From positions 1 through 64,000 of the IMG/VR virus record IMGVR_UViG_3300028536_000014: a stretch of 64,000 nt of DNA; one strand, written 5' to 3'. Both the position numbers and the translations under genes were made by a program. How positions within the stretch are numbered: the first letter of the stretch is position 1; the number at the start of each line of letters is the position of its first letter. Under the pieces are notes generated by a model, which worked only from the letters and a program-made list of their open reading frames with translations, was not told the origin of the DNA and searched no databases. Below, in pieces: positions 12,867 through 50,387 of this stretch.

Positions 12867-13701
12867 TGTTAATCTTCCTGGTATCTTGAATTTTACTAAT
12901 CATCTTCAATACAAAATTTTCAGCTCTACCAACCAGATCGATCGATTTAAATGCCGTTTCACCGACATCACGATAAGTTGTTAGAATCGCTTGTTCTGGT
13001 GTATCAGACATATAAATGATTGAAAGAATATTCAATGCAGATTGTTCATTGTTGTTTTCCACAACAAGATGTTCCTCTACAAAAGGAAGATAAAGACGTA
13101 ATGGATATCCTACTTTCATTCCAGCATCCAGTAAGACAAATCCAATATGAGATTTACCTAAAACGTCATTGAACAATTTAACACGCTCAATAATAGAGTA
13201 ATCAACAGGTTCTTCTTCTTCGAATTGAAGTTGATTTTCGATATAAAGTTCAAGAAGTTCTAATGTTCTTACATTAACTTCTTTTAATAAGTGAAGAAAG
13301 TGAGCTTGATCATATTCTGTCAGTTCTTCCAAAATTCTAGATAGTTTATCAACACTATCTTCTTCTGAAGTCAATATAGAAATAATCGTAATGTAATTTT
13401 CTAGATGTTGAATACGAAATAATGCATCTAAAATAATAATACGATCATGAGTTGTTGCGTTATCTGTTAACTCGATAAGATGTTGTTTAACGATGTAATC
13501 TAGTTGATTGTTAAGTTCAATTACAAAATGATTAGCTCTTGATTGAATATCAGAAACTGATTCGTTTGTAATTACATCAGTGATCCCACCATATGCATTT
13601 TGATGTTCGAATGCTTCGAAAAGACTAATTGCTTTTCGAATATTTTCAATGTATCCTGGTGTGAAGACATGAGAAATGAAGTCTTCAATAAGTTCGTTCA
13701 A
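12844..13701 (-). CDS. Conserved phiKZ-like hypothetical protein (gp79-like)
   Basis: 285 aa helical protein overlapping the vRNAP gene start. Confidence 0.65.
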   Translation of the reverse strand: MNELIEDFISHVFTPGYIENIRKAISLFEAFEHQNAYGGITDVITNESVSDIQSRANHFVIELNNQLDYIVKQHLIELTDNATTHDRIIILDALFRIQHLENYITIISILTSEEDSVDKLSRILEELTEYDQAHFLHLLKEVNVRTLELLELYIENQLQFEEEEPVDYSIIERVKLFNDVLGKSHIGFVLLDAGMKVGYPLRLYLPFVEEHLVVENNNEQSALNILSIIYMSDTPEQAILTTYRDVGETAFKSIDLVGRAENFVLKMISKIQDTRKINNEKTRLS

Positions 13702-13788
13702 TGACCCTCTCCTTAAGAATTTAATTCATACCACACTTATTAATTAGTGCGGGTCGTCACATCATGCTAAAACTAATAGGTAAAATTA

Positions 13789-14415
13789 ATGTCAAAGAAG
13801 ACAAGCTTTCCCACAAACAAACGTGTATCTCGCACGATCATGCAGGCTGAAGAACATAAATTTCCATTTCCTGTTTCAATACCAACCACTCAACGAACTG
13901 CGATTTCTAAAGAAGCTCGCAAACTCTCTCAACATTCAAAGCCTAATGTTCGCTCCCAACCTCGAACAACAGAATTAGAATGGAATACATTTAACGGGCT
14001 TTATCAATCAATAGCCAAAGGTATTCTGGAATTTTCTGAAGCAATTTTCCATAATTTAAAAGCCGTTGAAGCAAATAAGGAACATACGGGTGAAAAGGTT
14101 GATCCTGTTTTTCTTCGATTTGTTCAACAGGCTATTCAAGATTGTGAAACATTCTCAAAAGAATTGGTTCTTATAAAAGATCGTCATAAGACCAAAGAAG
14201 GTCAATTAGTGACTAATGATGAGATGGAAGAGTATTATGCACTCGGTGAAGCTTATTACAGTTTCTTCGAGCGATTCAAAACGATCGCTTTCCAAGCATC
14301 AGTCGAAATTACTGCTTACTTATCTTCGGAAGTTACTAACGTTGATGAAAATCAGAATCTTCAGAATCTAGTCGCAAATGCAACCAATACAATTTCCTCT
14401 ATAACAACAACTTAA
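13789..14415 (+). CDS. Conserved phiKZ-like hypothetical protein
   Basis: 208 aa ORF, divergent operon. Confidence 0.7.
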   Translation: MSKKTSFPTNKRVSRTIMQAEEHKFPFPVSIPTTQRTAISKEARKLSQHSKPNVRSQPRTTELEWNTFNGLYQSIAKGILEFSEAIFHNLKAVEANKEHTGEKVDPVFLRFVQQAIQDCETFSKELVLIKDRHKTKEGQLVTNDEMEEYYALGEAYYSFFERFKTIAFQASVEITAYLSSEVTNVDENQNLQNLVANATNTISSITTT

Positions 14416-14423
14416 AGCAAAAC

Positions 14424-16052
14424 ATGAACGAACATATTGAAGGTAGTGAAACTGGACAGACTGCAGTTGAACCATCAGTCATTGTAACTGAGGTAACTTC
14501 TTCTCCGTCTGTTGCAACTGCAACAGACGGAATTCAGCAGACAGATGCGGACTATCTTCAGGAACCAGATCCGCAAAAAACTGATCGATCAGAAGTTTCA
14601 GAATTTTCTTCTGAAGCACCAGAACCAACTTATAGTAAACGTCCCAATCAGAACGTATTTCTTGATTCGGTAGTCTCTAAGGATAATCCTGATCCTGCCG
14701 GCATTTCAATATCGCTTCCTAGTGATACTTCGACACGAACAGAAGAAGTCATTACTAATATTCCAAATATCGACGTGTCAGGAACCGAACAGGGAACCAA
14801 GTGGGCTCAAGCTGTACAAGCTGCTCTTGGCTTGAATTCATATGAAGATGTCTTCCTGTCAACACTGGAAGACCAAAATGCTGATTTTCATCAGAGCTTG
14901 GAAGTCAATGGAACAAAATTTGGTTCTAATGAAGTCAAATTCAGAGAACGCCAAAATACCTCCTTTGACGGTGAAGCAGCTGTTCTTCGTACTATTTCAC
15001 ATTTGGGGCTTGGAAGCACTTGGAATACCGGACTTTACAATACTGGTATTTGGATTACGTTCAAACCACCCACTGAAGAAGATCTAGTTGAGCTTTATCG
15101 TCAACTTACTGCAGATCAGATTGAAATGGGACGGATGTCTTATGGATTGGCATATGCTAACACTAGCTCGTATCATATCGAACGGTTATGCCGATTTGCA
15201 CAACAACATATTTATCGCATTAATGCAAATCCTGATGAAATTGGTCCGGCCAATATTCTTGACCATATCAAATCTCAGGATATCACATCACTGTTATGGG
15301 GACTTGCTTGTACAATGTTCCCTAAAGGTTTCAACTATAGCAGAGCTTGCATGGTTGATCCTGAAAAATGTCAACACGTTACAAATGAAATTCTGAATCT
15401 AAGAAAATTGCAATTAGTCAATCGTGCAGGTTTGACAGATCGTCAGAAAGCTCATATGGCTGAACACCGTGGTGGAACTAAGATTACTGTTAAGGATCTG
15501 CAATCCTACGGATCTGAGATGACACGAGCCTCTTTCCATCGAGTTGTTGTCAACGAAGGTGAGAAAGACGAAATTACAATTAATTTACGTTCACCTTCTA
15601 TAACTGAGTATATCCAAACAGGTCACCGTTGGATTGACGACATGGTCAATAATGTCGAACAGGTTTTAGGTTCCACTGGTACTGTGGAAGAAAAGAATAA
15701 ATTGATCGATATGAAATCTCGCGCTACAATCATGCGTCAGTATTGTCATTGGGTTAGTTCGATTGAACTTGACACCAATCAAATTACCGATAGGGCTTCT
15801 ATCGAAAAGGTATTGAATAACATCAGTGGTGATCAAAATATTCGTGAAACATTCTTAACGGAAGTGAAGAAATTCATTGAGAACTCTTCGGTTTCAGTTG
15901 TCGGTATACCCACCTATGATTGTCCTAAATGTGGTAAACCTAATGAAGGTAATATTACCTTTCCGTATCGGACCAATATGATTCCGATCGATGTCATCCA
16001 ACTTTTTTTCGTCCTGCTTACTCAGAAACGCAGGGATCTGGAGAACAGATAA
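14424..16052 (+). CDS. Conserved core protein (phiKZ gp77-like), probable tail/baseplate-hub assembly chaperone with Cys motifs
   Basis: 542 aa; CMVDPEKC, INLRSPSITEY and CPKC motifs reminiscent of T4 gp26-type hub chaperones; slippery site near 3' end. Confidence 0.6.
   Translation: MNEHIEGSETGQTAVEPSVIVTEVTSSPSVATATDGIQQTDADYLQEPDPQKTDRSEVSEFSSEAPEPTYSKRPNQNVFLDSVVSKDNPDPAGISISLPSDTSTRTEEVITNIPNIDVSGTEQGTKWAQAVQAALGLNSYEDVFLSTLEDQNADFHQSLEVNGTKFGSNEVKFRERQNTSFDGEAAVLRTISHLGLGSTWNTGLYNTGIWITFKPPTEEDLVELYRQLTADQIEMGRMSYGLAYANTSSYHIERLCRFAQQHIYRINANPDEIGPANILDHIKSQDITSLLWGLACTMFPKGFNYSRACMVDPEKCQHVTNEILNLRKLQLVNRAGLTDRQKAHMAEHRGGTKITVKDLQSYGSEMTRASFHRVVVNEGEKDEITINLRSPSITEYIQTGHRWIDDMVNNVEQVLGSTGTVEEKNKLIDMKSRATIMRQYCHWVSSIELDTNQITDRASIEKVLNNISGDQNIRETFLTEVKKFIENSSVSVVGIPTYDCPKCGKPNEGNITFPYRTNMIPIDVIQLFFVLLTQKRRDLENR
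16004..16010 (+). promoter_or_regulatory. Putative -1 programmed ribosomal frameshift site (U UUU UUC)
   Basis: In-phase X XXY YYZ heptamer in the 14424 ORF; the -1 frame is open from 15953 to 16537 and is the frame of the next ORF. Confidence 0.65.
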
Positions 16053-24301: not shown

Positions 24302-25792
24302 TTATTTGAAATTCCAACCAGGCGGTGGTGGTTGTTGAGCGTTTGGATTCATATAAGTAGGTTGTGGTTGATATCCTGCTTGTTGCTGGATAGGAACTTG
24401 AACATACTGATTATTTTGAACTACCCACTGATGACCAAGTGCGGGTGGTGGTAATTGAACCTGTGGTTGTTGCTGATAAACAGGTTGTTGATATCCTGCT
24501 GGAATATAACCAGCTTGAGATGGAGGATACATTGGCTGCTGTCCTGGATAATTCATCATAGGAGCGTTTTGTGGAGCAGCCCAACTAGGTACCTGTTGAA
24601 CTTGAGGTGCTCCAGGCATCATAACGCCAGGAGGAGGATATCCATATGTACGAATATGATTGTTGATATATTCTTGTGCAAGAATAGGCGCCATCGGGTT
24701 AGGCTGCATTGCCATAACTGGATTAGCTCTGAGCATATCAGTAAAATTAAGTTTACCATCAGCAGTTTCACGAACAACTGGCGCTTGATATTGAGGGGCC
24801 TGAGTTGGTTGAGGCGCTTGTTGATAAATAGGTTGTTGCTGAGTGGTTTGAGTAGGAGCTGGCGGATCTTGCTTATATTCAACCTTCTGAATAGGATGAT
24901 TTTGTTCACTTACTGTCGCTCTACCTCCATTACCTTTTACTAACTGAGGTAATTTTTCGATATCTGATCGCAGATCATCCAGATCTTGAAATGCTGCAAA
25001 CCATTCCATATCGAAAAGAGAGTCTTCATAATTAGGAATGAAATCTTTGTACATTGTAGTAATATCGTTCAAGCGTTGTGCAATAATTGCAGAGGTAGAC
25101 ATCAGAGCATCCAGATAAGGTGCTACTCGAGTCCTAGTTCCATAATTATAACTTTCCGATTTCTTGATATCAGGAAAGATAAACTCAACGATTTTCTTAA
25201 AAGCAGAACGATCTTTTACTCTGAGATGATCATATTTATCTGCAGTCAAATCCTGATAGAACGGAAAGGTCACAATACCCAATCGTGAATAAGCTTCTCC
25301 TCTCCATGTTCCAGAATGTTTCAGATAAAGTTTGATATAGGTTTCACTAAGATGTTGTTTAAGCAACTTCATCATTAAGTTAGACCAATGAATAGCTGTC
25401 TTATCATCGGCTTCACTGATAAATTTCAACAAAGCAATCTGATCTTCATCCAAACGTTTATGTTGTTCTGGAGAACCCAATAGACTAAGAAGATATTGAG
25501 CGGTGATTCCAAAAACACAATTGAATCGAATTGCGATATATTCTCTAAGTTTCTGAACAACCTCAGATTCACCTCTTACAAAGTTTTCACAGAAAGGATG
25601 GAAATAAACTCTTTTCTGATCAGGATTATTGAACTGAGAATGAATAGGAAGTACAAGTGGTTCACCATTAATTTCCACTTGTATTGAATCAGAATTTTTA
25701 TTGGGTTGAACATAAATGACACCATCACTGTCTGCATGAAGCCCTGCAAAAGACAGAATGGAAGTATATATATCCAGTATTTTCTTAGACAT
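24302..25792 (-). CDS. Chimallivirus core protein (phiKZ gp70-like) with Q/P/Y-rich low-complexity C-terminus
   Basis: 496 aa; sits between PicA-like and nvRNAP beta; last ~190 aa Q/P-rich. Confidence 0.65.
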   Translation of the reverse strand: MSKKILDIYTSILSFAGLHADSDGVIYVQPNKNSDSIQVEINGEPLVLPIHSQFNNPDQKRVYFHPFCENFVRGESEVVQKLREYIAIRFNCVFGITAQYLLSLLGSPEQHKRLDEDQIALLKFISEADDKTAIHWSNLMMKLLKQHLSETYIKLYLKHSGTWRGEAYSRLGIVTFPFYQDLTADKYDHLRVKDRSAFKKIVEFIFPDIKKSESYNYGTRTRVAPYLDALMSTSAIIAQRLNDITTMYKDFIPNYEDSLFDMEWFAAFQDLDDLRSDIEKLPQLVKGNGGRATVSEQNHPIQKVEYKQDPPAPTQTTQQQPIYQQAPQPTQAPQYQAPVVRETADGKLNFTDMLRANPVMAMQPNPMAPILAQEYINNHIRTYGYPPPGVMMPGAPQVQQVPSWAAPQNAPMMNYPGQQPMYPPSQAGYIPAGYQQPVYQQQPQVQLPPPALGHQWVVQNNQYVQVPIQQQAGYQPQPTYMNPNAQQPPPPGWNFK

Positions 25793-27279
25793 TAGACGAG
25801 CTCATTAACGGAAGATGGACTAGTGTCTTGTTGAACACTCTGAAGAATTTGGGTAAAGTCGTATACGTTATTACGGACTAATTGTTCATCTGTAGTAATG
25901 ATTGGGGCCATCAATGAGTCACAGAACGATGGCGCAACATACCGTGTCATTGGGTCAACTCCAATCTGTATATCGATAACAGTATCACCTAACAAATCGA
26001 TACTCATCTGGAGCATATAGGTTTCTTGATTTCCATGAGTTAAGTCATGCATAACCTCATGAATAAATCGTTGTTTAAAGACATTCAGGCTTTGTGAGAT
26101 ATCACGACCCATAATGTCTTTAGCACCCGTAAATAGAACATGATTTACGCCCATGTGGTCATGATTGTTCGAAGTGAATTGAAGTTTAAGGATCATCATC
26201 TCCATCATGATCGTTGGAACAGCATTGATCAGAACAGAAGCAACCCATGCACCACGATCATTCGGGTTATGCCAATATTCAGATTGCCCCGCGTGATTCA
26301 ATCTTGTCATGGCGGCGGATGTCAATGTAATGAAGTTTGAAACAGAGCGATCAAGAACATTGTTGTCTATCATCACTAAATGTTTCAATTTGAAGGTAGT
26401 TGAGTCAGGTTGACCTGTAACGTCAGATAAACGCCTAAAGAACGCTTTCTCTGATAAACTACCTTCATGCACATAACCTTTACAACGGCTATAAATATCA
26501 GCTTGACCAGATCCATAGGAAAGTAACGCTTGTCCTGTCTGATAACTATTAACCATTGTTGCCAAAATATTGGCTGGAAGATTATTAGAACGAGAATTTG
26601 GAACAGATGAACGAGATAACGTATGACGTTCATCTTTTATTCGACTATGGTTGTCTTGATCGAATATTTCCTGAGCAATAGGACCGTGTTGCATTACGGT
26701 ATAGAGTTCATTTGGACGCATTCCGTAGACGTCATGATTGAGCTGACTCGAAACTAACCGACCATTAATGACTTGCGCTGATTCGGTTACGATTTCACGT
26801 GTTTCGATACCCGTTGGAGTCAAAATCTTGGTTTGACTGATTTGAGTATAAGAATTAATAAAGAACAACATATCAGGATCAGGAGTACCTACCAAACTGG
26901 TATCAAAATGACTGGTATATCCTTGAATATGGAGTTGAAAAGTTGAACCAGTGCTACTGGTTATTTCCACAACCATACTGAACCTACCACGAGGATTTTC
27001 CCACCCGTTTGTAATGGGAATAACCCCCATGTGTTGTGGTGACGGCATCATGATACGATTAGCAATACCTGCCATTAGACTGGTTGTTGTTCCACCAGGT
27101 CCATTGTTAGCAACTCGTTTTGCTAAATCGTCTGCAATACTGGCATCATAATGTGTCTCGTATGGACGAGAATACATTGGGTTATAAGTACCTGAACGCA
27201 TAACGATCAATTTCAGAATACGTAGACCGATAGTCACAGGACGTGCGAAAGATTGTGTATAACCAGCTTGAGTATTAAT
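25792..27279 (-). CDS. picA: Probable phage-nucleus protein importer PicA/Imp1 (phiKZ gp69-like); likely ATT start at 27279 (ORF track: GTG at 27237)
   Basis: Synteny: directly downstream of the 520 aa sigma-like nvRNAP subunit; size ~490 aa; assignment by position rather than alignment. Confidence 0.6.
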   Translation of the reverse strand: MNTQAGYTQSFARPVTIGLRILKLIVMRSGTYNPMYSRPYETHYDASIADDLAKRVANNGPGGTTTSLMAGIANRIMMPSPQHMGVIPITNGWENPRGRFSMVVEITSSTGSTFQLHIQGYTSHFDTSLVGTPDPDMLFFINSYTQISQTKILTPTGIETREIVTESAQVINGRLVSSQLNHDVYGMRPNELYTVMQHGPIAQEIFDQDNHSRIKDERHTLSRSSVPNSRSNNLPANILATMVNSYQTGQALLSYGSGQADIYSRCKGYVHEGSLSEKAFFRRLSDVTGQPDSTTFKLKHLVMIDNNVLDRSVSNFITLTSAAMTRLNHAGQSEYWHNPNDRGAWVASVLINAVPTIMMEMMILKLQFTSNNHDHMGVNHVLFTGAKDIMGRDISQSLNVFKQRFIHEVMHDLTHGNQETYMLQMSIDLLGDTVIDIQIGVDPMTRYVAPSFCDSLMAPIITTDEQLVRNNVYDFTQILQSVQQDTSPSSVNELV

Positions 27280-27288
27280 TTCGTTCTC

Positions 27289-28851
27289 CTATTTAAATAG
27301 CGGTGTTGGATGCAGATTATTCCGACTTTGAATCTCGATCACTAATCTAGCGAGATCAGTTTTAATATCTGGTTTGATTGGATACCGCATTGTTCGATAA
27401 CCCAAGACTTGTTCAACTCGATCTATTTCTGTGGTAGGTCGCCAACCATACGTCATTAAGTTATTAGTAAGCCGATCAATGGATTCCATAGCCAGATTGG
27501 CTCCTCTGTTATCTGCTTTCTTAATACGTTGACTACGACGATAAGTATATAAAACATCCAGTTGTTCGATGAGAGGTTCTGCTATTCTCATCTTACTATC
27601 AACTGTAGAAACAACCATTTCTTTATCAGATCGAATCGGATGAGATGTAATTAATAAAGAAAGGTAGTGATGTCCACGTCGCCAAAGAACAGCTTCAGCA
27701 ACACCCATCAGTTGTTTTAATAGCTGGTCTGGTAAATAATGAATGATTTTCTGAGAAACAATCGATCTGAAAATCCATCGTAACAATGTCACTTGGGGTT
27801 CTGTGGTTAGCCCTTCATAATCTTTCATATGTTCAACACAACGAAGAACATCATTATGATCGATACCAGGTGATAAATATTGTCCAACTCGAAAAAGATC
27901 CGACAGAAAATATTCGATCTCAACAATATCACCGATAGCAATATTAGCTTTGATTTTATACCGTTCCAGTGCAGAAGCACGAGCGGTATTTTCATCCATC
28001 GTGTCGTCAATCTCTTTATTCTTTATCTTCGAATCGCCGGTATCATCTTTAGTTGACAACCGACCGGAAATGAACATATACATAAATGTAACAAGATGGG
28101 CTTCTGGATTAACACCTCGAATATCTCCAGTAGCTAAACACCGAATACAAACGAGTGCTAATAGCCAACGTGGATAATCGGAAGTTGGAATTCCTTTGAA
28201 CACATTCATCTGACGTGTCAGATTGGCGGAATGAATCGTGTTATCGATATAGTTCATAAGTTTCTTGACTGCAGGAACTTCCGCGTTCAATACCTTATCA
28301 ACAAGTTGGAAAGCTAACATTTCTTTGAAACTATCATCTGTTTCTTGTTTTATACTAGAAATGTATTCTCCCCAAATAGGAATCATACAACGTAGTACTA
28401 AAGACAATGTTGTTAATCGACGATAATCACTCGCAATATATGTTTTGCCTGATGATGTATTACGATCAACATCTACAATAAACTCGTTTGGTATTGATAA
28501 TGGAAGTTTAATATCAATTGCTTTGAAAGCAATCCATTCTTGAACTTTTACAAGATCGTGATAGCTGAGAAGTTCTTTGACTTGCTCCTGAAGAAACTCA
28601 CGAAGTGTCTGTTTGGTATAACCAATATCGTCGAAAGAGTTCAGGATATTTCGATAGATATTGAAAATAGTTTGTTGAACTTCAGGTGTCTGATCAGCCC
28701 AATAATCATTAATCTGACTAAAGACATCCATATCACCAGAGAAGACCGTTCGACGATAGAACGATATGGAGAAACTAAGAGTCTGACCTAGATGTTCTAT
28801 GATGACCGATGGTGTCACATTCGCCAATGAAACCGAGGCAAAGATTTTCAA
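27289..28851 (-). CDS. Non-virion RNAP fifth (sigma-like promoter specificity) subunit (phiKZ gp68-like)
   Basis: 520 aa helical protein matching gp68 size and position; TTG start with AAGGAG SD; early promoter at 28880-28899. Confidence 0.7.
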   Translation of the reverse strand: MKIFASVSLANVTPSVIIEHLGQTLSFSISFYRRTVFSGDMDVFSQINDYWADQTPEVQQTIFNIYRNILNSFDDIGYTKQTLREFLQEQVKELLSYHDLVKVQEWIAFKAIDIKLPLSIPNEFIVDVDRNTSSGKTYIASDYRRLTTLSLVLRCMIPIWGEYISSIKQETDDSFKEMLAFQLVDKVLNAEVPAVKKLMNYIDNTIHSANLTRQMNVFKGIPTSDYPRWLLALVCIRCLATGDIRGVNPEAHLVTFMYMFISGRLSTKDDTGDSKIKNKEIDDTMDENTARASALERYKIKANIAIGDIVEIEYFLSDLFRVGQYLSPGIDHNDVLRCVEHMKDYEGLTTEPQVTLLRWIFRSIVSQKIIHYLPDQLLKQLMGVAEAVLWRRGHHYLSLLITSHPIRSDKEMVVSTVDSKMRIAEPLIEQLDVLYTYRRSQRIKKADNRGANLAMESIDRLTNNLMTYGWRPTTEIDRVEQVLGYRTMRYPIKPDIKTDLARLVIEIQSRNNLHPTPLFK

Positions 28852-35553: not shown

Positions 35554-36645
35554 TTATATTTCAATTAAATAAATTGGTTTATTTAACTTTCTCATAGTTT
35601 CGACCATATGTGTCGTTCCTGGAGATTTATCTTTCTTGATGGCGATTAATACATCGGCGTATTTAGCCATCTCCTCATTTCTGATAAAACCAGCTCGTTT
35701 CTGATATTGATCCCAATCTGCTGGAAATTCTTTAAATGGAATAAACCGTTCTTCAGCAAAACGTCTTCCTAACAAATCAACTCCTCTTGCCCCACCTTCA
35801 ACAATCTCTCCTATATTAAACATAGAGCTGTTGATTGTATCACAAACTAGATCGTAATTATCAATAGAACGACTTCCAGCTACAATGACTTTAAGATCTT
35901 TATTATTAATTAGACCTTTAAGCTGGTCTCTTAACTTGCCATAATAATAATTAAACCAACTCGATGTCCAATGTCCTATAGCTTTAGTATCTAGACCATT
36001 TCCAACCATAAAGTAATGAGTGAAAGGTAGTGTTGATTCTTTAAACGCTTTAAGAAGATGAGGAGTTTGAATGATCTTTAATCGAACTGCTTCTTCTATG
36101 TCACGTATGAAAGTTGGATATTCAACTCTCTGAAATCGTTTTCCTTCTTCCTTAGCTTTGAAACCATAAAGTATTCTGAACTGGTCATGCTTACGTTCGG
36201 TTAACAACCAATACCAATATCCTTCGATACTAGCAAATCGACCGTGTTTAGGATGTTCGAATCCGATATTAGCGAAGTGTGATAAATTTCTACCTAATTC
36301 ACTTCTTGCTTTCGACCAACAATTGATGTGGTCAATTGTATCTTCTAATGGATTATAACGAACTCGAATTGGATTTTTCATCTCTTCGTTTGCTACCTTA
36401 ATTAAAATATGGCCATGACAAGCTAATGGGCTACACCAACAGATTAGATCGCGGCCTTTTAATTCTTCTCGAGCTTGTTGTTTGAGTTCTTCGTTTTTAT
36501 CTAACCATTCTTGATACAACTGACAAACCTTATCCCGATCTGCTTCTGAATGCATTGGAAATGGATTTCCCCACTTTGAAGGTCGTCCAATATAAACGCT
36601 ATCCTTCGTAATAATATCAGTCCGTTTATTAAGAACTTTTGGCAT
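35554..36645 (-). CDS. Three-domain fusion: DUF4326 + NADAR-like + SLOG (YspA/DUF2493-like)
   Basis: N: VYIGRPSKWGNPF...LICWCSPLACHG; middle: LSHFA...FASIEGYWY...AKEEGK...AVRLKIIQTPHL; C: VIVAGSR...IVEGGARGVD...PADW...AGFIRNEEM. Confidence 0.75.
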   Translation of the reverse strand: MPKVLNKRTDIITKDSVYIGRPSKWGNPFPMHSEADRDKVCQLYQEWLDKNEELKQQAREELKGRDLICWCSPLACHGHILIKVANEEMKNPIRVRYNPLEDTIDHINCWSKARSELGRNLSHFANIGFEHPKHGRFASIEGYWYWLLTERKHDQFRILYGFKAKEEGKRFQRVEYPTFIRDIEEAVRLKIIQTPHLLKAFKESTLPFTHYFMVGNGLDTKAIGHWTSSWFNYYYGKLRDQLKGLINNKDLKVIVAGSRSIDNYDLVCDTINSSMFNIGEIVEGGARGVDLLGRRFAEERFIPFKEFPADWDQYQKRAGFIRNEEMAKYADVLIAIKKDKSPGTTHMVETMRKLNKPIYLIEI

Positions 36646-41753: not shown

Positions 41754-42857
41754 TTAGAAGTCTATGTCGTAAATAACACCACTGTCATTACGAGTCATAA
41801 TGTTCACTTTGTAACTTGCTAATAATTGTTCTTGAGGACTTCCTTGAGATTTAGAAAGGTCCATATAGTTAGTCATATAACCAAGAGGATTCTTTTTCGG
41901 AATAATAAGATCAGAATCTGGTTTAATCTCAAGGAAATTATAAACATCTGAAGCAGAATGCATAACCCAGGCTTTTAGGTTTTTACCGTTTAGTCCTGAT
42001 AATGGATCTTCATCCATCCTCATATAGTCAACCCACGCACATTCTAGATCGATCGCACCACGAATCATTTTGCGAACGAAAGGTAATGTTTGTATACGAG
42101 CAATCTTTCCACGTTCAGTTAAATGTTCGTTTCTAAGAACTACTTTATCCATCTCGACATGAATCTCGTATTCATCATGACAGATCTTCTTGACGGCTTC
42201 GACAATTTGCATGAAAGCATTTGTTTCACCAATTGCAAACGTCACTGCAAAACTTGGCATAAACTGTATGCGTTCTAAAACCAAGAGAGCAATAACGAAG
42301 AGATAAGCTGCATTGTAAGTCTCTTGATTGTTTTCACGAAGTCCTAAGGAGTATTCGTGAGAGATACGATGTGTTGCACTCATGACATCACCAACTACAG
42401 AGAGTCGTTCTAATGCTTTCTTTTCTTTCAAAATACTAGCCATTGCAGTTTCGCTATCATCGAAACTGTTCTTGACAATCTCAGAATAAGTAGCAGCATG
42501 AACAACTTCTGATGCAGTAATCACTGACCATGCAGCAAAAGCTTCTGTAGACGTAATGAATGGTGCTAGTGTCGTCAGAATTGAATTAGCCGCAATAGAA
42601 TCAGCTTCCCATTGCCAAGCAATTGTTTTGACCATTCGATCGACCAATGACTTCGACCGTGTTTTGAATTCCACATTCATGGGTTTGAAATCGAATTCGA
42701 GTTCATCCCAATCGTCTGATTTCATACTTTTATAAATCTTCCAGATCTCTGGATGATTCTTGTGAACCGTATCAAACAAACCACGAGGTTGACCTAGGAA
42801 TATACTTCCTGTTTCATTATAATCTGTTTTGTTTGCATTAAAGATGTTCTCATTCAT
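41754..42857 (-). CDS. nrdB: Class Ia ribonucleotide reductase beta subunit
   Basis: WEADS, SEVVHAATY (radical Tyr), LERIQFMPSF, DEYEIH. Confidence 0.93.
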   Translation of the reverse strand: MNENIFNANKTDYNETGSIFLGQPRGLFDTVHKNHPEIWKIYKSMKSDDWDELEFDFKPMNVEFKTRSKSLVDRMVKTIAWQWEADSIAANSILTTLAPFITSTEAFAAWSVITASEVVHAATYSEIVKNSFDDSETAMASILKEKKALERLSVVGDVMSATHRISHEYSLGLRENNQETYNAAYLFVIALLVLERIQFMPSFAVTFAIGETNAFMQIVEAVKKICHDEYEIHVEMDKVVLRNEHLTERGKIARIQTLPFVRKMIRGAIDLECAWVDYMRMDEDPLSGLNGKNLKAWVMHSASDVYNFLEIKPDSDLIIPKKNPLGYMTNYMDLSKSQGSPQEQLLASYKVNIMTRNDSGVIYDIDF

Positions 42858-42872
42858 GATTTCTTATACATC

Positions 42873-45365
42873 CTAAAGTGAACATGAGCCGCTTTCACAA
42901 CCAACACTCTCAAGTTCCTCGTACACTTGTTCAGGTTGTTCTGGTCCAAGAATTTGGAATACTTCCTCTTGTTCAGGTTGATCCAAATTCACTTCTTTTG
43001 AAGTTTTTGCGTTGGTGTAGTATTGAGTCTTCATACCTACGCTATACATCATGAATACATGTTGAAGCATTTCGTCACTAGAAACTTTACTGTCTCCTAA
43101 TAGACGTTGGAAGAAATCTGCTGAGATTGACATATCCGTCCATTTCTGGAAGATACCATACATCTCGATCTGGTCTTTAATTGGAACATCCCAAGCCAGT
43201 TCATATTGGTCAGCAAGCGTATCGCTATCTGGAGCAGTCCAATAGACTTTTGCATGACCATCGGTTTTCATCAATGAAAGATCACGAGCAGGATAGATGG
43301 AATTAAATCCACCAGAGGCTTTCGATGAACTCTCACCAGGCATATAAGCGACTAATGCTGAGTTTCGAATACCACCGTTCGCAATAATGTCAGTCTTGAG
43401 TTGATCCCAATCATATTGGTTTTCAACACCACCGATGATCTTATCCACATTTTTGTTATAAGTATCCAGAGGAGTCCATCCTTCTGTCCACTTGGTACGA
43501 TGGATCCAAGGTGCGTTACCCAGTTCTTGACCCAATCGTAACGATGCCTTGATAGCGAAATACATGTGACGTTCTGCAACACGATGCATTTCCTGCTTAC
43601 CTTCAAGTGTTGAATACTTGAGTCCTTTCTTCGCCATGTAGTGCGCCAGACTCATGATACCAACACCAGCGTTAAGTCGATTCTTCGCAGTATATCCTAC
43701 ATGTGGTAATGGATAATCCGACATGTGAATACATTTATCAATCATTAACAACGAATAATACATTGCTTCTTCGTATTCTTCATCATCTTTAATGTTAGGA
43801 AGAACAACACCAGCCAACGAACACAATGCAACCTCAGGTTCTTTCTTCAAGTTTACGATTTCATCAACAGTATAGACTGTAGTGTCGTCACAATAAAAAC
43901 TACTTCCGACTTTTAGGTTTTGAGCTGCATCACGTGTTCCATCGACTAAATGAACAATATCAGAAGCATTAAGCGTTAATGCAATATGACGTCCTTTCAC
44001 AGTAAACGAAATATAACCTACACCTTGATCTGAATACAGATCTTTCATGTCCTCATAAGCACAAGTAGGTTCACAGATTTCGACACATAAATTGGAAGAA
44101 TAGATCGGATCCTTAAAAGGAGTATGACGGTTGATTTCACCGATATCAGCGAAATAGGCACGACCCGTTTCATACGCTTCATTTCGACTGTGAAGAAGGA
44201 TCTCACGTGCTGACATATAAGTTTTCTTAAATGTCGGATCGTTTTCATACCGCTCATAGATCTCGATGAATTTATCCAGATCTCCGCTGTAGAATGCTTC
44301 GTTTAGATCAGGAGCAGTAAATGCATTGAAAAGAAATACATCTTCCTTACGAGCAGCTTTACGACCTAAGAACTTATTTGTGAGCATCGCATAGTCAAGA
44401 CCACGGATCTGCTTATCAGCAGGTGTCATGGGGTTCTTGAGTCGCAGAATATCTCTGTTCTCTGGATCAAAAGCAGAAAAGAAAACGTTACAGGCTCCAT
44501 TACGACCATTCTTGATATTAGCTTGAACAGCACCGTACAATGCTCGGTAGTATGGTATCTTACCACGATGAGCAAACAAACCACCACGAACTGGATCACC
44601 GACAGAACGTGTTTGAAGATTAGTGCCGATACCTGCTGACATGACAGTCATCATGTACGCAATATGATCACCAACGCCTAGAGAGCGAGCATTATCATTG
44701 ATGTTGATCAAACAACAACTGGCATAACCATTCAGCTTCGTAGCAAGATTAGTATAATTCGGAGTTGGACAGTTGATCACATTTTTGGAAAAGTATTTGT
44801 ACCAAATTTCTACATCTTTGATTCGACGTTCCTTAGGTTGATCATTCCCTAATGCCATCGCCATTCGCATGAACACAAACTGGGCAGTTTCGTATTCTTC
44901 TTTCGTCAGATGGTTACGAAGTGCATACTTGTTACGAATTTGTTCTAACTGAGTATGTGCATAATCGAAATCACGTGTATGTTGAATCACGGTATTCAAA
45001 TGCACATATTCTTCATCGGTATATGAAAGCGGAACCATATAACCGATATCAATCAGCTTTTGATGTAATTCTTTAATAGTTGGGATCTCATCCCCATAAA
45101 AGATTTTGTGCAAACTGGCTCCATAAAGACGACCCGCCATACGGTTGTTTGCCCAGGTTCCTTGATTAAGAAAATGACGAATCAAAGCATCTTGAAGATC
45201 ATTACTGGTTGTCTTTACTGGTAATGATCTAACAGCTGCCATAACACCAGAAGCCCAATCAACATGGTCACCTAGAACTTCAGCAGCCCATATCCCCCAG
45301 CCGTTAATTTTTTTAGCCTGGTATGGTTCTTCTCTTCCGTTTCTTTTAATGATAGTCTCAATCAC
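42873..45365 (-). CDS. nrdA: Class Ia ribonucleotide reductase alpha subunit
   Basis: IKRNG ATP-cone start, CPTPN, ASCC, SSNLCVEI, ALCSLA, MPGESSS, KTQYY, C-terminal CESGSC. Confidence 0.95.
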   Translation of the reverse strand: MIETIIKRNGREEPYQAKKINGWGIWAAEVLGDHVDWASGVMAAVRSLPVKTTSNDLQDALIRHFLNQGTWANNRMAGRLYGASLHKIFYGDEIPTIKELHQKLIDIGYMVPLSYTDEEYVHLNTVIQHTRDFDYAHTQLEQIRNKYALRNHLTKEEYETAQFVFMRMAMALGNDQPKERRIKDVEIWYKYFSKNVINCPTPNYTNLATKLNGYASCCLININDNARSLGVGDHIAYMMTVMSAGIGTNLQTRSVGDPVRGGLFAHRGKIPYYRALYGAVQANIKNGRNGACNVFFSAFDPENRDILRLKNPMTPADKQIRGLDYAMLTNKFLGRKAARKEDVFLFNAFTAPDLNEAFYSGDLDKFIEIYERYENDPTFKKTYMSAREILLHSRNEAYETGRAYFADIGEINRHTPFKDPIYSSNLCVEICEPTCAYEDMKDLYSDQGVGYISFTVKGRHIALTLNASDIVHLVDGTRDAAQNLKVGSSFYCDDTTVYTVDEIVNLKKEPEVALCSLAGVVLPNIKDDEEYEEAMYYSLLMIDKCIHMSDYPLPHVGYTAKNRLNAGVGIMSLAHYMAKKGLKYSTLEGKQEMHRVAERHMYFAIKASLRLGQELGNAPWIHRTKWTEGWTPLDTYNKNVDKIIGGVENQYDWDQLKTDIIANGGIRNSALVAYMPGESSSKASGGFNSIYPARDLSLMKTDGHAKVYWTAPDSDTLADQYELAWDVPIKDQIEMYGIFQKWTDMSISADFFQRLLGDSKVSSDEMLQHVFMMYSVGMKTQYYTNAKTSKEVNLDQPEQEEVFQILGPEQPEQVYEELESVGCESGSCSL

Positions 45366-46276: not shown

Positions 46277-46308
46277 AGTGAAGAGCACGGAGTTCCGTGC
46301 TCTTCACT
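46277..46308 (-). terminator. Terminator directly after tasA
   Basis: 15-bp perfect inverted repeat agtgaagagcacgga / tccgtgctcttcact followed by a U-tract on the minus strand. Confidence 0.8.
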
Positions 46309-46315
46309 AACTTTG

Positions 46316-47533
46316 TTACCGACGCTGCCAGTTCCCTTCTTTTGCTACCCGATGCTTTTTCAGAAGTACTCCCTCCGAATATTCAGACGCCACCGGAAGA
46401 CCTTCAGCCGTACGATACGCGGTATAAAAATCCACCAAGAACCGTTTGACACAGAACCGAAGAGCCATGCGATGCTTCTGCAGAGGAGACTTTCCAGCAT
46501 GCTTAGGATTGTTTCCAAGCCGTTCCTTGTAGTTGTAGTAGGCCATCCCGTACGGAGAACCTTCACGCTCAACTGTGAAGCCCTGTCCCATCAGGAAATC
46601 ATTGATGACAGAGTTGGGATCTTCTTCGCCGATGGTCTTCTTGTCGAGTCCATGCTCAACAGCCAGCTCGAGACGTTTTGCCATACCCATTGCTTTGCCG
46701 TTGACCTTGAAAGAGGTCACCTTGAGGAATGCCGGTCCGATGACACCCAACAGCTTGGTTTTGAGGAACGGAGAATAGGTAATGGAATCACGAACAGCTG
46801 GGTTGTCGTTCTTGTCGATGTAGTCACGCTTCACCAACGAGTAGGACTTCATGTCACGTGCAACGCCCACCACATTGCACACCACACCCTTGTGAAAGAA
46901 CACGCCGTCCATGTTTTCCAACTCCGGAGCGTTCATCGCCTGTTCGAACGAAAGCCTGATGGTCTTGTTACCGACTTCGTATTCCACCACCTGGACGACA
47001 TCCAAACCACCGTACGCCCAAAGACTGGACGGGTACTCGGCCTTGTGGATGTCGATCTCGGAGATGAGAACACCAGCCGCTGCCGGGCCGATACCTGCTA
47101 CGCCTTGAAGAAAGTTCTTGTAGACAGGAACCGTTTTGAGCATGATGCCGATGTCAGCGAAGTGCTGCTCTTCGACGTCCAGAATCTTGACGTAGTTCTC
47201 GATCAGGAACAATTCGGCCATGTTGGTGATCAAATCGTCGGGTTGGAAATTGCGTTCCATCTGCAGACGTGTGACCATCTTGCCGCCGGTGATCTCGATG
47301 ATGCCGTCAGTTATACGATTGTAGGAATCACGCAGACGCTTCAGGATACCCTTTTCCTGAGCTCCGAGTTCCTTCTCAGACATGCCGTCGGTCGACATTC
47401 CAAGTTTGGTTCTGAAATTGCCAGCGGTGCGGTTACCGATCATGATACGCAGCTGCTGAAGATCGTAAACCGAACGAACCATCGTCCGAATCTGGGATCT
47501 TTGATATGCGGTGTTTGATGTGGGGTTACTCAC
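46316..47533 (-). CDS. tasA: TasA-like Nop-domain (IS110 C-terminal/Transposase_20-like) RNA-binding protein with no RuvC or HNH domain
   Basis: N-terminal coiled coil (RTMVRSVYDLQQLRIMIGNR); GVAGIGPAAAGVLISEIDI...SSLWAYGGL; YSPFLKTKL; YYNYKERL; HRMALRFCVKRFL; GTG start with AAGGAG SD; ~53-58% GC in sampled lines; adjacent to 36-nt dual-repeat array. Confidence 0.85.
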   Translation of the reverse strand: MSNPTSNTAYQRSQIRTMVRSVYDLQQLRIMIGNRTAGNFRTKLGMSTDGMSEKELGAQEKGILKRLRDSYNRITDGIIEITGGKMVTRLQMERNFQPDDLITNMAELFLIENYVKILDVEEQHFADIGIMLKTVPVYKNFLQGVAGIGPAAAGVLISEIDIHKAEYPSSLWAYGGLDVVQVVEYEVGNKTIRLSFEQAMNAPELENMDGVFFHKGVVCNVVGVARDMKSYSLVKRDYIDKNDNPAVRDSITYSPFLKTKLLGVIGPAFLKVTSFKVNGKAMGMAKRLELAVEHGLDKKTIGEEDPNSVINDFLMGQGFTVEREGSPYGMAYYNYKERLGNNPKHAGKSPLQKHRMALRFCVKRFLVDFYTAYRTAEGLPVASEYSEGVLLKKHRVAKEGNWQRR

Positions 47534-47625
47534 AATGATACTCCTTAGATTGATCTCACCTTTTTATTAAGGATGAGAAGATTGGCTTAACAGCTGGATG
47601 AAACGTTGACAACTCTGAATTCGGT

Positions 47626-49952
47626 TGATGCGCTACTTTCTATTGGTTTGCTTATACGCGTTGACACACTACGAGCAGATGGATGTCTTTTTTCACGTGA
47701 TTGAAACGTTGATGTCCTTTGGGGAAATCAGTTTATTTGACACACTTGTACGTCATGGGTGAATATCTAATTATGATGCACTAAATCCTTCTGGGTTACT
47801 AGCCAATAGAAATACGCTTAGTGTCGTTGTGTGAACACATTTCAATGACCTGACACGCTTTCATAGTGCGGATTACTACTTTTCATTGACACACTTGCTT
47901 ACATTGGGTAGCTATGAGAAGGTGATTGCACTGAACTCTCACATAAAGTATATGTGACTGAAATTGTTTCAGAATGGAGCGCTGTATCTTTAAGGTTTAC
48001 TCACGATCAGTTGACACACTTTTTCTCAATGGGTGACTAATTAGGGTTGATACACTAATCGAAAATGGGTGAATACGTCCTTTTGATACGTTAACGTCGT
48101 TTGGATTTACTTACGGCGTATGACTCACTTTTTTCCAATGGATAACTATGGATCGTTGGAACACTTTAACTTGCTGGATGAATTGCAGAAGATAGTGAAA
48201 CACTAGAATCTCGTGGATGGATACTTCCCGTTGATGCGTTTATCTGATATGGATGTCTACTGATGGTTAACACACGCTCGCGCTATTGGGTTTATTATTT
48301 CCACAGACACGTTCGTTGACACTGAGTGAATAAATTACTATGACACGTTCTGTACTTGTGGATGACTCTGGCGACAATAACACACTCGCTTATATTGGAT
48401 TACTTTGATATAATGATACATTCGCTGATTTTGATGGATAACTCGAATTCCATGACACATTCAAATACTAAGGTTGACTCTGATTCTTTAACACGTTTTA
48501 TCTTAGTGGATGTCTACAACCCAATGACACAATTAATCTTTGAAGGGTTTCTTTTCTCTTCTAATGTTCACTCTTGATCTTTGGATGAATACAGATCAAT
48601 GATCCGCTAGTTCAAATTGGGTTACTTCCGTACATTGACACACTTTTGTTGACTGGATGTCTACCGACTGATGATGCACTTAGCATTTATGGATTACTAT
48701 ATGTAAAAGGTACGATCTTTGCCCTTGGGGTTCTGAGGAAACTTGACTCAATTGATCGTTTTGGTTGACTTCTTCTTCAAGTTACACTTGTCACTACTGG
48801 ATGTCATGTAGATTTTTATTCACATATCAAGCATGGTTATCTTTTCATCTTTGATACACTTTCCACTAGTGGGCGACTTTTAATTCCTGATACGTTTTAC
48901 GGTTATGGTTGACTATTTGTCTACGACACACTTGAACCCCATGGTTGACTAATTGTAGTTGATACAATAATAACATCTGGATTTTTTCCTTATATTGTTT
49001 CACTACTTAACATTGGGTTTATTACCGCGTATGGTGCGCTAACGTTCTTTGGGATACTTTATTGATTTGACACACTTTTGATCTTTGGGTCACTTTAGAT
49101 CACTAATTCACTAGCCGATATGTGGTTATCTTCTTCCTCTAGATACGTTTAACCACTATGAATGTCTTAACTTCTCTGACATACTTTATGGAGATGGGTT
49201 TCTTTAATGGAATGATACATTTACGCAATATGGGTTCATCTTGAGTGATGACACACTATCGTTCTTTGGTTGACTTTCAGACAGTGGTTCACTAGATACT
49301 TATGGAGATCTTTTTTTGGGGGGGGGGGTGATTCGTTTCCTCATTATGGATTTCTATTTGACATTAACACATTAATTTTCGCTGGGTTTATTCACACCGA
49401 TAACACGATAGATGATATTGGGTTTCTCCAGCATTTAACACACTAAGCTAATTTGGGTGAATGGTTTTAATTGATACACTTCGTATCGATGGTTGAATTC
49501 CAACATTTGGTACATTTTACTTCGATGATTTTCTTGATCTCTTTGATGCGATTGTATTCAATGGTTGTCTACACACTTATGTCACATTAGGTTATTTTGG
49601 ATGACTTTTTGTCGATGACGCACTAACGCTACTTGGATAACTCGTTTTCGATGATACATTGTCAGTTCACTGGGTGACTGTCGTCTTTTGATGCACTTTG
49701 AAAGGGTAGGTTTATCGGAGTCTGTGATACACTAAACCTCTATGGTAGAATTATGGTTATTGATACACTTGAATATTTATGGGTTACTGATAGTCAATGA
49801 TATTCGCTGCGTTCTTCTGGTTGACTCACTAATGGTAACACATTTGGTTGCTATGGTGTTCTTTCTTCTTCAAATTACACTAATGAATCGTGAGAATATT
49901 TCTATTGTGATACACTTGTACCTAATGGATGAATCTTTTCCCATGATTATGA
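47626..49952 (-). ncRNA. TIGR-type array: about 62 tandem 36-nt units (9-nt repeat, 9-nt spacer, 9-nt repeat, 9-nt spacer)
   Basis: Plus-strand consensus TGAYACACT-N9-TGGRTKACT-N9. Examples: 48012 tgacacact ttttctcaa tgggtgact aattagggt; 48048 tgatacact aatcgaaaa tgggtgaat acgtccttt; 49908 tgatacact tgtacctaa tggatgaat cttttccca. Hand count: 8 units in 47626-47922 and 54 in 47975-49943; spacers appear unique. Confidence 0.9.
47945..47964 (-). promoter_or_regulatory. Early-type promoter inside the TIGR array
   Basis: Minus strand ATTTCAGTCACATATACTTT interrupts the 36-nt register. Confidence 0.65.
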
Positions 49953-49969
49953 GAACTCTCGTTCTCAAA

Positions 49970-50033
49970 TAGAGTATGTATGATTGAAATAATTTAAAAA
50001 CAAAAAAAGAGAAGAGACAAAAGTCTCTTCTCT
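49970..50033 (-). promoter_or_regulatory. Terminator + early promoter cassette driving the TIGR array
   Basis: Hairpin 50008-50033, then ATTTCAATCATACATACTCT about 20 nt before the first array repeat. Confidence 0.75.
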
Positions 50034-50054: not shown

Positions 50055-50387
50055 CTACATGATTACTCGGTCGGAAAGACCGTCAATCACGCTATTGATC
50101 AACTCAGGATGCTTGTTGATCAACGTCAATACAAGACACTCGATATCATCCGGAGTCTTCTGCCCCGTTTCCCACCGCTGCATCGAGCCAGATGCAAACC
50201 CGTAGTAATTTTCAAATTCTCGTCGGGTAAGATCAGTCCGTGTCCGCGTAACCATGATGTTGAAAGGAGTTAACATCATAGCTTCACGAGTGGGTTTTCG
50301 ATCACCCACTGTACATTCCACTATTTCTTTGAGACCACGCAAAACAACTGCTTGCATTCCTTCAGACTGCCAGCCTTCATGTTGCAT
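50055..50387 (-). CDS. XRE/Cro-like HTH protein (HigA/MqsA-type DNA-binding domain)
   Basis: TRREFENYYGFASGSMQRWETGQKTPD...LINKHPE. Confidence 0.7.
   Translation of the reverse strand: MQHEGWQSEGMQAVVLRGLKEIVECTVGDRKPTREAMMLTPFNIMVTRTRTDLTRREFENYYGFASGSMQRWETGQKTPDDIECLVLTLINKHPELINSVIDGLSDRVIM

Follow-up and report, generated by a model that had tools for sequence, protein, structure and literature searches.

A putative dual-repeat TIGR-TasA locus with a long guide array in a phiKZ-like jumbo phage

TIGR-Tas systems were described in 2025 and their natural role is still open. TasA proteins bind 36-nt tigRNAs (PMC12045711) and repress transcription reversibly in an RNA-guided manner (bioRxiv 10.64898/2026.09.09.750476). 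In SpTasH, Tyr289 and His296 catalyse metal-independent processing of the pre-tigRNA (PMC13421893), and this Tyr/His dyad is reported as conserved in dual-repeat systems. In the TasR complex, the ends of the processed tigRNA are joined by a box C/D pair and one extra covarying edge pair. The current study concerns a repeat array and the adjacent gene, tasA, in a 64,000-nt stretch of DNA (positions 1 to 64,000, referred to here as the window) of IMG/VR record IMGVR_UViG_3300028536_000014, a phage genome of 244,725 bp. The evidence suggests that the locus is very probably a dual-repeat TIGR-TasA system of a phiKZ-like jumbo phage, with a nuclease-free binding protein and approximately 63 guides that most likely act on non-self DNA. 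It lies within what is probably a complete genome of approximately 245 kb, and combines one of the longer arrays examined with a recognisable promoter and clear boundaries.

The array and its transcription unit

Upstream of tasA, and on the same strand, lies an array of approximately 63 units of 36 nt (Table 1). Autocorrelation of positions 47560-50000 gives peaks at lags of 18, 36, 72 and 108 (0.34, 0.40, 0.35 and 0.32, respectively, compared with a median of approximately 0.27), the peaks at 18 and 36 being those expected by a first-pass annotation of this stretch. A 36-nt profile recovers 57 units scoring above 6 bits, compared with 0.46 in shuffled sequence. When the profiles of the two 9-nt repeats are chained with flexible spacing, 63 copies of each are found from 49934 to 47626, close to the approximately 62 units counted originally. 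Both repeats open with A-G (A in 91-98 % of copies) and close with CCA or UCA, their logos reading A-G/u-u/a-c/a-A-n-C-C-A and A-G/a-U/c-G-u-r-U-C-A. Most units consist of 9-nt repeats and 9-nt spacers, and the description of the spacers as essentially unique holds for the 57 best-parsed units, in which all 114 spacer 9-mers are distinct. The array had also been called strictly periodic. It is periodic, but not strictly so: 97 of the 125 repeat-to-repeat steps are exactly 18 nt, the other 28 range from 17 to 21 nt, and there are three irregular spots, namely a C11A7 run, a 5-nt insert near 47850 and a 52-nt insert with a predicted fold energy of -14.8 kcal/mol (z = -2.7). The C11A7 run could be a slippage-prone tract or a weak point of the assembly.

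Covariation within the array assigns the two repeat types to their roles without RNA sequencing. Position 6 of the AGUGUrUCA repeat in copy k pairs with position 3 in copy k+1, 33 nt downstream, in 43 of 44 cases (98 %; 23 A-U, 16 G-C, four G-U and one mismatch), with a mutual information of 0.62 bit that none of 2000 shuffles reaches. Position 7 and position 2 of the following copy are also paired, in 95 % of cases. Inside the same copy, positions 3 and 6 do not covary, and C occurs with A 12 times. The cross-copy covariation recurs in six independent arrays (L002, L003, L007, L011, L035 and L067), and the two edge pairs recovered here are the same two pairs as those of the TasR complex. Because the pairing is between copies and not within them, AGUGUrUCA can be assigned as the edge repeat and AGUCAyCCA as the loop repeat. 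This agrees with the ends of the array, where a 5'-truncated AGUGUrUCA-type repeat comes first and a full copy comes last. It follows that the predicted 36-nt tigRNA would comprise edge positions 5-9, spacer A, the loop repeat, spacer B and edge positions 1-4. The covariation, which amounts to a sequence-only proof of RNA-level function, shows selection on the array at the RNA level that acts on single units. The cross-copy pairing also indicates that the unit with which edge polymorphism segregates is the 36-nt RNA and not the copy of the DNA repeat, a hint that arrays may gain or exchange units as modules whose joints fall at the processing site. If true, this modular joining would be a first clue to how TIGR arrays gain guides.

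A CRISPR-Cas system, for which the criterion applied was a single repeat of approximately 23-50 nt with spacers of similar size and cas genes, was considered and rejected, as it had been from the outset: two 9-nt repeats alternate with 9-nt spacers, PADLOC detected no system, and an Rfam search of the locus gave chance-level matches only. Tandem Repeats Finder reported nothing in the array region, since the repeats are too short and the spacers unique, and this fits the earlier prediction that CRISPR finders would miss the array. A megablast comparison of the locus with 50,697 phage records also gave no match. Two guides, at 49103-49068 and 48599-48564 (both minus strand), differ at just four of 18 spacer positions; a minimum guide difference of 4/18 or lower was found in 13 of 300 controls. 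In both guides, TGATCT occurs in spacer A as well as in reverse-complemented spacer B, and the two may represent a duplicated unit or guides for related sites.

The array leader carries a promoter-like motif. Its core, TTTCAATCATACATAC, has eight matches in the window at up to two mismatches, compared with 0.88 expected; all eight are on the minus strand and upstream of genes, and most are intergenic, 30-70 nt before the start codon. The motif family, TTTCAAyCATAyATwC followed by TCTAwTTGA, has 5' ends at 13025, 23905, 39213, 41260, 47963, 49989, 52599 and 54406 (minus strand). The copy before the gene starting at 41193 is identical to the array leader over approximately 37 nt, a variant precedes an RNA polymerase beta-like gene at 23831, and the leader of a related locus (L009) carries a similar motif. 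Where phages have multisubunit RNA polymerases of their own, the motif that sequence analysis can detect before operons is that of the early promoters, which the virion polymerase reads (PMC7598289). The family is thus probably the early promoter class of this phage, and the early promoter originally proposed before the array is supported, by inference, from the exact copy of a recurrent motif and this precedent. A diverged copy with two mismatches within the 52-nt insert may be an internal promoter for the last nine or so units and tasA. A scan for sigma-70 promoters returned fewer sites than did shuffled sequences, and is uninformative because the phage has its own polymerases.

Array and gene had been described as sharing a strand and being flanked by a terminator; strong intrinsic terminators are in fact found both before the leader and after the gene. 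The former would isolate the array transcript from upstream transcription, and the lack of a terminator in the linker makes co-transcription of the array and tasA plausible.

The tasA product and its relatives

A model of the tasA product built by AlphaFold on the family alignment (predicted local distance difference test score, pLDDT, 85.5; predicted template modelling score 0.76) shows long N-terminal helices followed by a mixed domain. In a Foldseek comparison with the PDB, the ten best matches are all TasH or TasR chains (probability 1.00, E 2e-6 to 7e-5), followed by the bridge recombinases IS621 and ISCro4 (E 0.04-0.1) and then by archaeal Nop5. The ranking reproduces the published order of relatedness of Tas proteins. 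Comparison with TasA, TasR, Nop5 and IS110 had been suggested, and the Tas structures are the nearest. A single-sequence search against solved structures also found TasR (9MTY) and TasH, and a profile of 27 homologues matched TasR 9MTY at 4e-18 and TasH at 5e-11. Residue 23 of the protein aligns to residue 123 of TasR, and the RuvC part of TasR has no counterpart. A protein that starts at the coiled-coil, without a RuvC or HNH module, has the TasA architecture; no nuclease domain was found in it by Pfam, NCBIfam or PADLOC.

The NCBIfam model NF052498 (TIGR_Tas_endo, 'TIGR-Tas system RNA-guided endonuclease', an equivalog model) matches at 79.5 bits (E = 3e-22) over model positions 1-114 of 215, which makes the protein a relative and not an equivalog. 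Since the score is under the model's cut-off, standard annotation would leave such a protein unnamed or call it 'transposase', as in phage records. Consistent with this, PHROGs places the protein in a family labelled 'transposase', and Pfam gives only a sub-threshold match to Transposase_20 (15.3 compared with a cut-off of 21.3). Identity as an IS110-family transposase was rejected: there is no N-terminal DEDD domain, and the NCBIfam IS110 score of 16.3 bits is far under the threshold of 140. The fold, the profile alignment, the sub-threshold NCBIfam match, the arrays beside homologues and the covariation together bear out the first-pass annotation of a TIGR array with a TasA-type, nuclease-less Nop-domain protein. 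Its role as a nuclease-dead programmable binder is put forward on the basis of the missing domain and of published work on TasA.

Near the C-terminus, Tyr385 and His394 are invariant in 27 of 27 aligned homologues, and the segment is modelled as disordered. Tyr385 aligns with SpTasH Tyr289, and the pair is a candidate processing dyad.

Two insertions distinguish the protein from relatives of approximately 290 aa (Table 1). They fall at and after the wedge, which in TasR separates the DNA strands (bioRxiv 10.64898/2026.09.09.750476); equivalent anchors here are approximately 130 residues apart, compared with approximately 20 in TasR. Dual-repeat Tas proteins have been described with a compact Nop core (bioRxiv 10.64898/2026.09.09.750476), and by this standard the long form found here is unusual. 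The insertion lacks invariant Asp, Glu and His residues, and its conserved core is basic and hydrophobic. Modelled alone, the insertion region folds poorly (pLDDT 61), and a fold search of the PDB gave no credible match (best probability 0.14).

Relatives are numerous. A word-indexed search found 367, the nearest with 51 % identity and many on contigs of 200-285 kb, and an exhaustive search of 1.84 billion representatives gave 1,410 clusters with E <= 1e-3, of which 330 had E <= 1e-30. The 120 closest clusters were placed in a tree, and 97 of these are of the long form; the window protein belongs to a clade of five with full support, where its branch is long. Six relatives of 670-880 aa (P0131, P0134, P0163, P0164, P0172 and P0201) match only the N- or only the C-terminal half of the query, and may be fusions or tandem Tas proteins. 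Eighty viral homologue loci were examined, these being the ones fetched with the family alignment, and approximately 70 of them have a period-36 array directly beside the gene. The association of gene and array is therefore general among these relatives, a point on which the original reading had been held to depend. The relatives' arrays all use two repeat types, AGnnAnCCA (often A-rich, AGAAAACCA) and A(A/G)yGnryCA. The AG...CCA and AG...UCA box signature recorded earlier is thus real and common to the whole clade, and it is a clade trait and not a peculiarity of one locus. On jumbo-sized contigs a long array precedes the gene (8-51 units parsed, 21-51 in most); at other loci it is usually downstream, with 7-28 units and one outlier of 48. 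No accessory gene is conserved beside tasA in eleven related loci, which suggests that the module consists of gene and array.

The neighbouring gene upstream of the locus (50055-50387, minus strand) encodes a 110-aa MqsA-like helix-turn-helix (HTH) protein (Pfam PF15731, 32.5 bits, above the cut-off); an MqsA-like HTH gene is not conserved beside tas in relatives. A 401-aa open reading frame (ORF) antisense to tasA (46313-47518, plus strand) was rejected as a gene, as the family and structure matches are all in the minus-strand frame. This frame spans the whole of tasA, its 'homologues' are antisense in relatives too, and it is a by-product of a conserved GC-rich gene.

Table 1. Coordinates of the features described, numbered from the first nucleotide of the window
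Feature	Position	Strand	Description
gp62-gp63-gp64 homologues	24302-28851	-	PhiPA3 order, next to an RNA polymerase beta gene; chimallivirus-type synteny
Intrinsic terminator closing the array-tasA unit	46277-46308	-	14-bp stem with 8 G-C pairs, then T run
tasA	46316-47533	-	405 aa, GTG start; coiled-coil, then Nop-type C-terminal domain; no N-terminal nuclease domain
C-terminal loop	46352-46381	-	Tyr385 and His394, candidate pre-tigRNA processing dyad
Insertion 2 of tasA	46562-46714	-	Residues 274-324, alpha/beta; absent from ~290-aa relatives
Insertion 1 of tasA	46862-46981	-	Residues 185-224, beta hairpins; absent from ~290-aa relatives; at the TasR wedge region
Array-to-gene linker	47534-47625	-	92 nt; ribosome-binding site AAGGAG at 47546-47541; no terminator
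Array	49952-47626	-	5'-truncated edge repeat, then (spacer A, loop repeat AGUCAyCCA, spacer B, edge repeat AGUGUrUCA)n
Irregular insert in array	47923-47974	-	52 nt; diverged promoter-motif copy at 47963-47948 and two hairpins
C11A7 homopolymer run	49311-49328	-	Breaks the array register; read from sequence; 8-nt gap in the parse
Leader with phage promoter-like motif	49965-50001	-	Core TTTCAATCATACATAC at 49989-49974; leader ~55 nt overall
Intrinsic terminator closing the upstream MqsA-like HTH gene	50008-50033	-	11-bp stem, then T run

Phage context, guide targets and proposed mechanism

A second, independent assembly (ENA ERZ27253151, k141_3951635) of 244,788 bp has another start point and carries the same gene. 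From the two different starts, a complete and circularly permuted genome is probable. Pieces of a split RNA polymerase beta subunit are encoded in the window. The nearest named phages are Burkholderia phage FLC9 and phiKZ-like phages of Ralstonia, Xanthomonas and Pseudomonas (31-39 % identity), and these relatives are listed among the chimalliviruses. A full-length homologue of the nuclear import factor PicA (PhiPA3 gp63; E = 2e-43 over 503 aligned columns) is present together with likewise full-length homologues of PhiPA3 gp62 (phiKZ gp68) and gp64 (E = 2e-32 and 1e-34, respectively). Chimallin and PhuZ gave no match in the 64-kb window, either by tblastn with the PhiPA3 proteins or by Pfam. 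The phage had been taken to be nucleus-forming; the split RNA polymerases and the PicA homologue in its conserved order favour this indirectly, and on the sequence evidence a nucleus-forming phage is likely. Elsewhere in the window, separate segments of a 363-aa ORF (35554-36645, minus strand) match several unrelated PHROGs, among them an NrdA-like piece and a GTP-binding domain. The ribonucleotide reductase genes (41754-45365) are a few kb away, and the ORF may be a mosaic or an intein-related remnant.

Targets of 18 bp were built as spacer A plus the reverse complement of spacer B, in both orders, with four geometries used in the window. Searched against the 64-kb window, the guides (57 and 40 guide pairings) have no target at 0-1 mismatch, and at two mismatches there are two matches compared with 0.75 expected, which is the control level. 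For the 1,393 guides of approximately 70 arrays, 0.8 Mb of flanking and related sequence contains no exact target, and the 18 cleanly parsed guides of Ralstonia phage phiRSL1 have no 0-1-mismatch target in the complete 231-kb phiRSL1 genome, which was searched in five pieces. By chance, an 18-mer would have approximately 0.07 matches in 2.3 Gb. The reconstruction of targets envisaged earlier was thus carried through on the window, the related sequence and phiRSL1, and yielded control-level results in each. These results make broad self-targeting unlikely. As no self-targets were found in the window or in phiRSL1, the targets are probably host or rival DNA. The literature likewise suggests the host chromosome or competing elements; in published work targets were not findable, most loci being on short metagenomic contigs.

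The following mechanism can be proposed, in which processing, DNA binding, repression, timing and target class are modelled on published studies of TasA, TasH and TasR. The array would be transcribed from the sequence-detectable promoter class, presumably early and by the virion RNA polymerase. Transcription would probably run on into tasA, and the internal promoter copy may drive the last nine or so units together with tasA. TasA would dimerise via its coiled-coil and bind both repeat types, loop and edge, at their box D (AG) and box C (CCA or UCA) ends. The Tyr385/His394 loop would cut the precursor in the middle of each edge repeat, yielding 36-nt tigRNAs with 5 nt of edge at one end and 4 nt at the other, around spacer A, the loop repeat and spacer B; two base pairs would join the ends of each tigRNA. 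The ribonucleoproteins would then each bind an 18-bp DNA site, the two strands of which would be recognised by spacer A and spacer B, respectively. Binding would block transcription or replication and not cut, since the protein has no nuclease domain. The approximately 63 guides would most likely act on DNA other than that of the phage, either the host chromosome or competing mobile elements.

Several observations weigh against this proposal or against parts of it. The NF052498 score is under the curated cut-off of 100 bits, and box D is AG, compared with UG in the TasR complex of known structure. The distance from the tyrosine on to His394 is nine residues, compared with seven in SpTasH, and with this longer spacing the equivalence of the two dyads stays a candidate one. 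Approximately 140 residues of insertion sequence have no known fold, although hidden activity there is unlikely. Some repeat positions carry only 0.4-0.9 bit of information, and with such degeneracy and three irregular spots some units of the array may be dead. The target search covered 64 kb, or 26 % of the phage genome. Finally, tasA is the compositional outlier of the window, with a GC content of 0.51 and a third-codon-position GC (GC3) of 0.63, compared with medians of 0.37 and 0.27 for 36 ORFs, of which the next highest GC3 is 0.35. The spacers, at 0.34-0.36, are near the phage genome (0.37), and different histories for tasA and the array are a possibility. Among relatives, tas generally has a higher GC content than the flanking sequence, and the GC of the spacers follows that of the flanks but is lower in every case. 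Recent gene transfer, spacer turnover or selection on the gene are possible causes of the outlying composition of tasA.

Other explanations of the locus were weighed against the same evidence. The ~90 extra residues lie at the wedge region, near the site where TasR unwinds target DNA, their fold is unassigned, and the matching NCBIfam model is named for an endonuclease; it could be argued that the insertions (residues 185-224 and 274-324), or a partner encoded elsewhere, are a nuclease and that targets are destroyed by RNA-guided cutting. This seems very improbable, as the insertion has no invariant Asp, Glu or His and a basic, hydrophobic core, no nuclease domain is reported by the three domain resources, no gene is conserved beside tasA in relatives, and short-form relatives without the insertions keep their arrays. 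Slightly less well placed is the suggestion that the guides steer TasA to promoters or genes of the phage itself and set the temporal programme of infection. It draws on the reversible, RNA-guided repression by TasA proteins, the early-type promoter before the array and the closeness of spacer GC to genome GC. The absence of any 0-1-mismatch target in 64 kb would be very unlikely if most of the 63 guides hit the genome evenly, the two matches at two mismatches, with 0.75 expected, are at control level, and the phiRSL1 guides and the 1,393 guides of related arrays point the same way in the full 231 kb and in their own flanks, respectively; self-regulation is accordingly considered very improbable.

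That the locus is a decaying relic, with a horizontally acquired tasA and a drifting array that has few or no working guides, would explain the degenerate repeats, the three irregular spots and the outlying composition of tasA, as well as a spacer GC that is under genome GC at every locus, as neutral drift would give. It is nevertheless highly unlikely: 43 of 44 adjacent units keep the closing pair by alternating between A-U and G-C, which needs ongoing selection, the ORF is intact with the invariant residues of the family, the promoter, ribosome-binding site and terminators are intact, and long arrays are the rule in related jumbo-phage loci. Least credible, and close to untenable, is a DNA-level element, with the period-18/36 repeats serving as binding sites for proteins (as iterons, a centromere or a packaging signal) and the tasA product representing what is left of an IS110-type transposase. 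Public records do name homologues 'transposase', there is the weak match to Transposase_20, and ParB-like genes accompany some TasA loci (PMC12045711). However, the covariation of position 6 with position 3 of the next copy, 33 nt away, follows Watson-Crick and wobble rules on one strand only, and such one-strand cross-copy pairing is not expected of DNA-binding sites; moreover, the IS110 score is 16 bits compared with 140, there is no DEDD domain, and the closest structures are those of Tas and not of IS110.

An extension of the TIGR-TasA interpretation is that self and non-self are told apart by location, and not by sequence, in a nucleus-forming phage and, separately, that arrays grow in tigRNA-sized modules; this is regarded as unlikely, but less so than any of the explanations just discussed. 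If true, some 60 guide complexes without a nuclease, made early, would remain cytoplasmic and act there to silence the host chromosome or rival phages and plasmids, the phage DNA itself being enclosed in the shell.

Comparison with known systems

The locus belongs to the known TIGR-TasA family and is not a new kind of system. FpTasA of Flavonifractor plautii (Faure et al., 2025; PMC12045711) is likewise a solo coiled-coil and Nop protein beside a two-repeat array, and systems of this type share with the present locus repeats of approximately 9 nt, 9-nt spacers, a 36-nt unit, a covarying edge closing pair, a terminator that bounds the locus and the lack of accessory genes. The N-terminal helix motif ..YDLQ.LRI..GNR.. 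of the window protein resembles the start of FpTasA given in Table S1 of PMC12045711. The differences are that the array here is upstream of the gene and behind a jumbo-phage promoter, that box D is UG in FpTasA-type systems whereas AG box D and a UCA edge box C are found here, and that the protein is approximately 110 residues longer by virtue of the two insertions at or after the wedge. Arrays of TIGR-TasA systems number 'most often 5 to 15' units, with a mean near 16, compared with approximately 63 here. An array approximately four times the usual length, the phiKZ-like host, the two wedge insertions, the AG/UCA boxes, the early-type promoter and the internal second copy of its motif, the covariation across copies and the occurrence of such an array in the cultured phage phiRSL1 are the notable features of the locus. 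No paper linking TIGR-Tas with jumbo or nucleus-forming phages was found in the literature searched.

The best structural matches are to SpTasH of Salicola phage CGphi29 (PDB 9W03, 9W04 and 21KL), which is also phage-encoded and accompanied by a dual-repeat array. Its C-terminal loop carries the Tyr and His that process pre-tigRNA independently of metal, and this Tyr aligns with that of the window protein. SpTasH differs in having an N-terminal HNH nuclease with which it cuts DNA, a Tyr-His spacing of seven (nine here) and spacers that total 16 nt (18 here). TaTasR (PDB 9MTY) shares the coiled-coil dimer scaffold, the Nop domain and the same two closing pairs of the tigRNA, but carries an N-terminal RuvC domain (about residues 1-108) that is absent here, and its wedge is of ~20 residues where ~130 separate the equivalent anchors here. 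The IS110 bridge-RNA recombinases (IS621 and ISCro4) have the RNA-binding domain in common, and differ in their DEDD/RuvC-like domain and in using one bridge RNA in place of an array of short guides.

A homologue of the tasA product is encoded by ORF034 of Ralstonia phage phiRSL1 (345 aa, 30-33 % identity), a cultured phage of 231 kb. The record annotates ORF034 as 'transposase' and has no annotated feature over an array of 36-37 units, with the same repeat types (AGUCAyCC and AGyG..CC), in a gene-free 1.4 kb. Together, ORF034 and this gene-free stretch span NC_010811.2 13180-15640, with gene and array at 13180-15579. In this case the array is downstream of the gene, and the phage, of the genus Mieseafarmvirus, is not phiKZ-like. 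With the same type of array in a cultured phage, phiRSL1 offers a native phage-host pair in which the targets of such guides can be sought.

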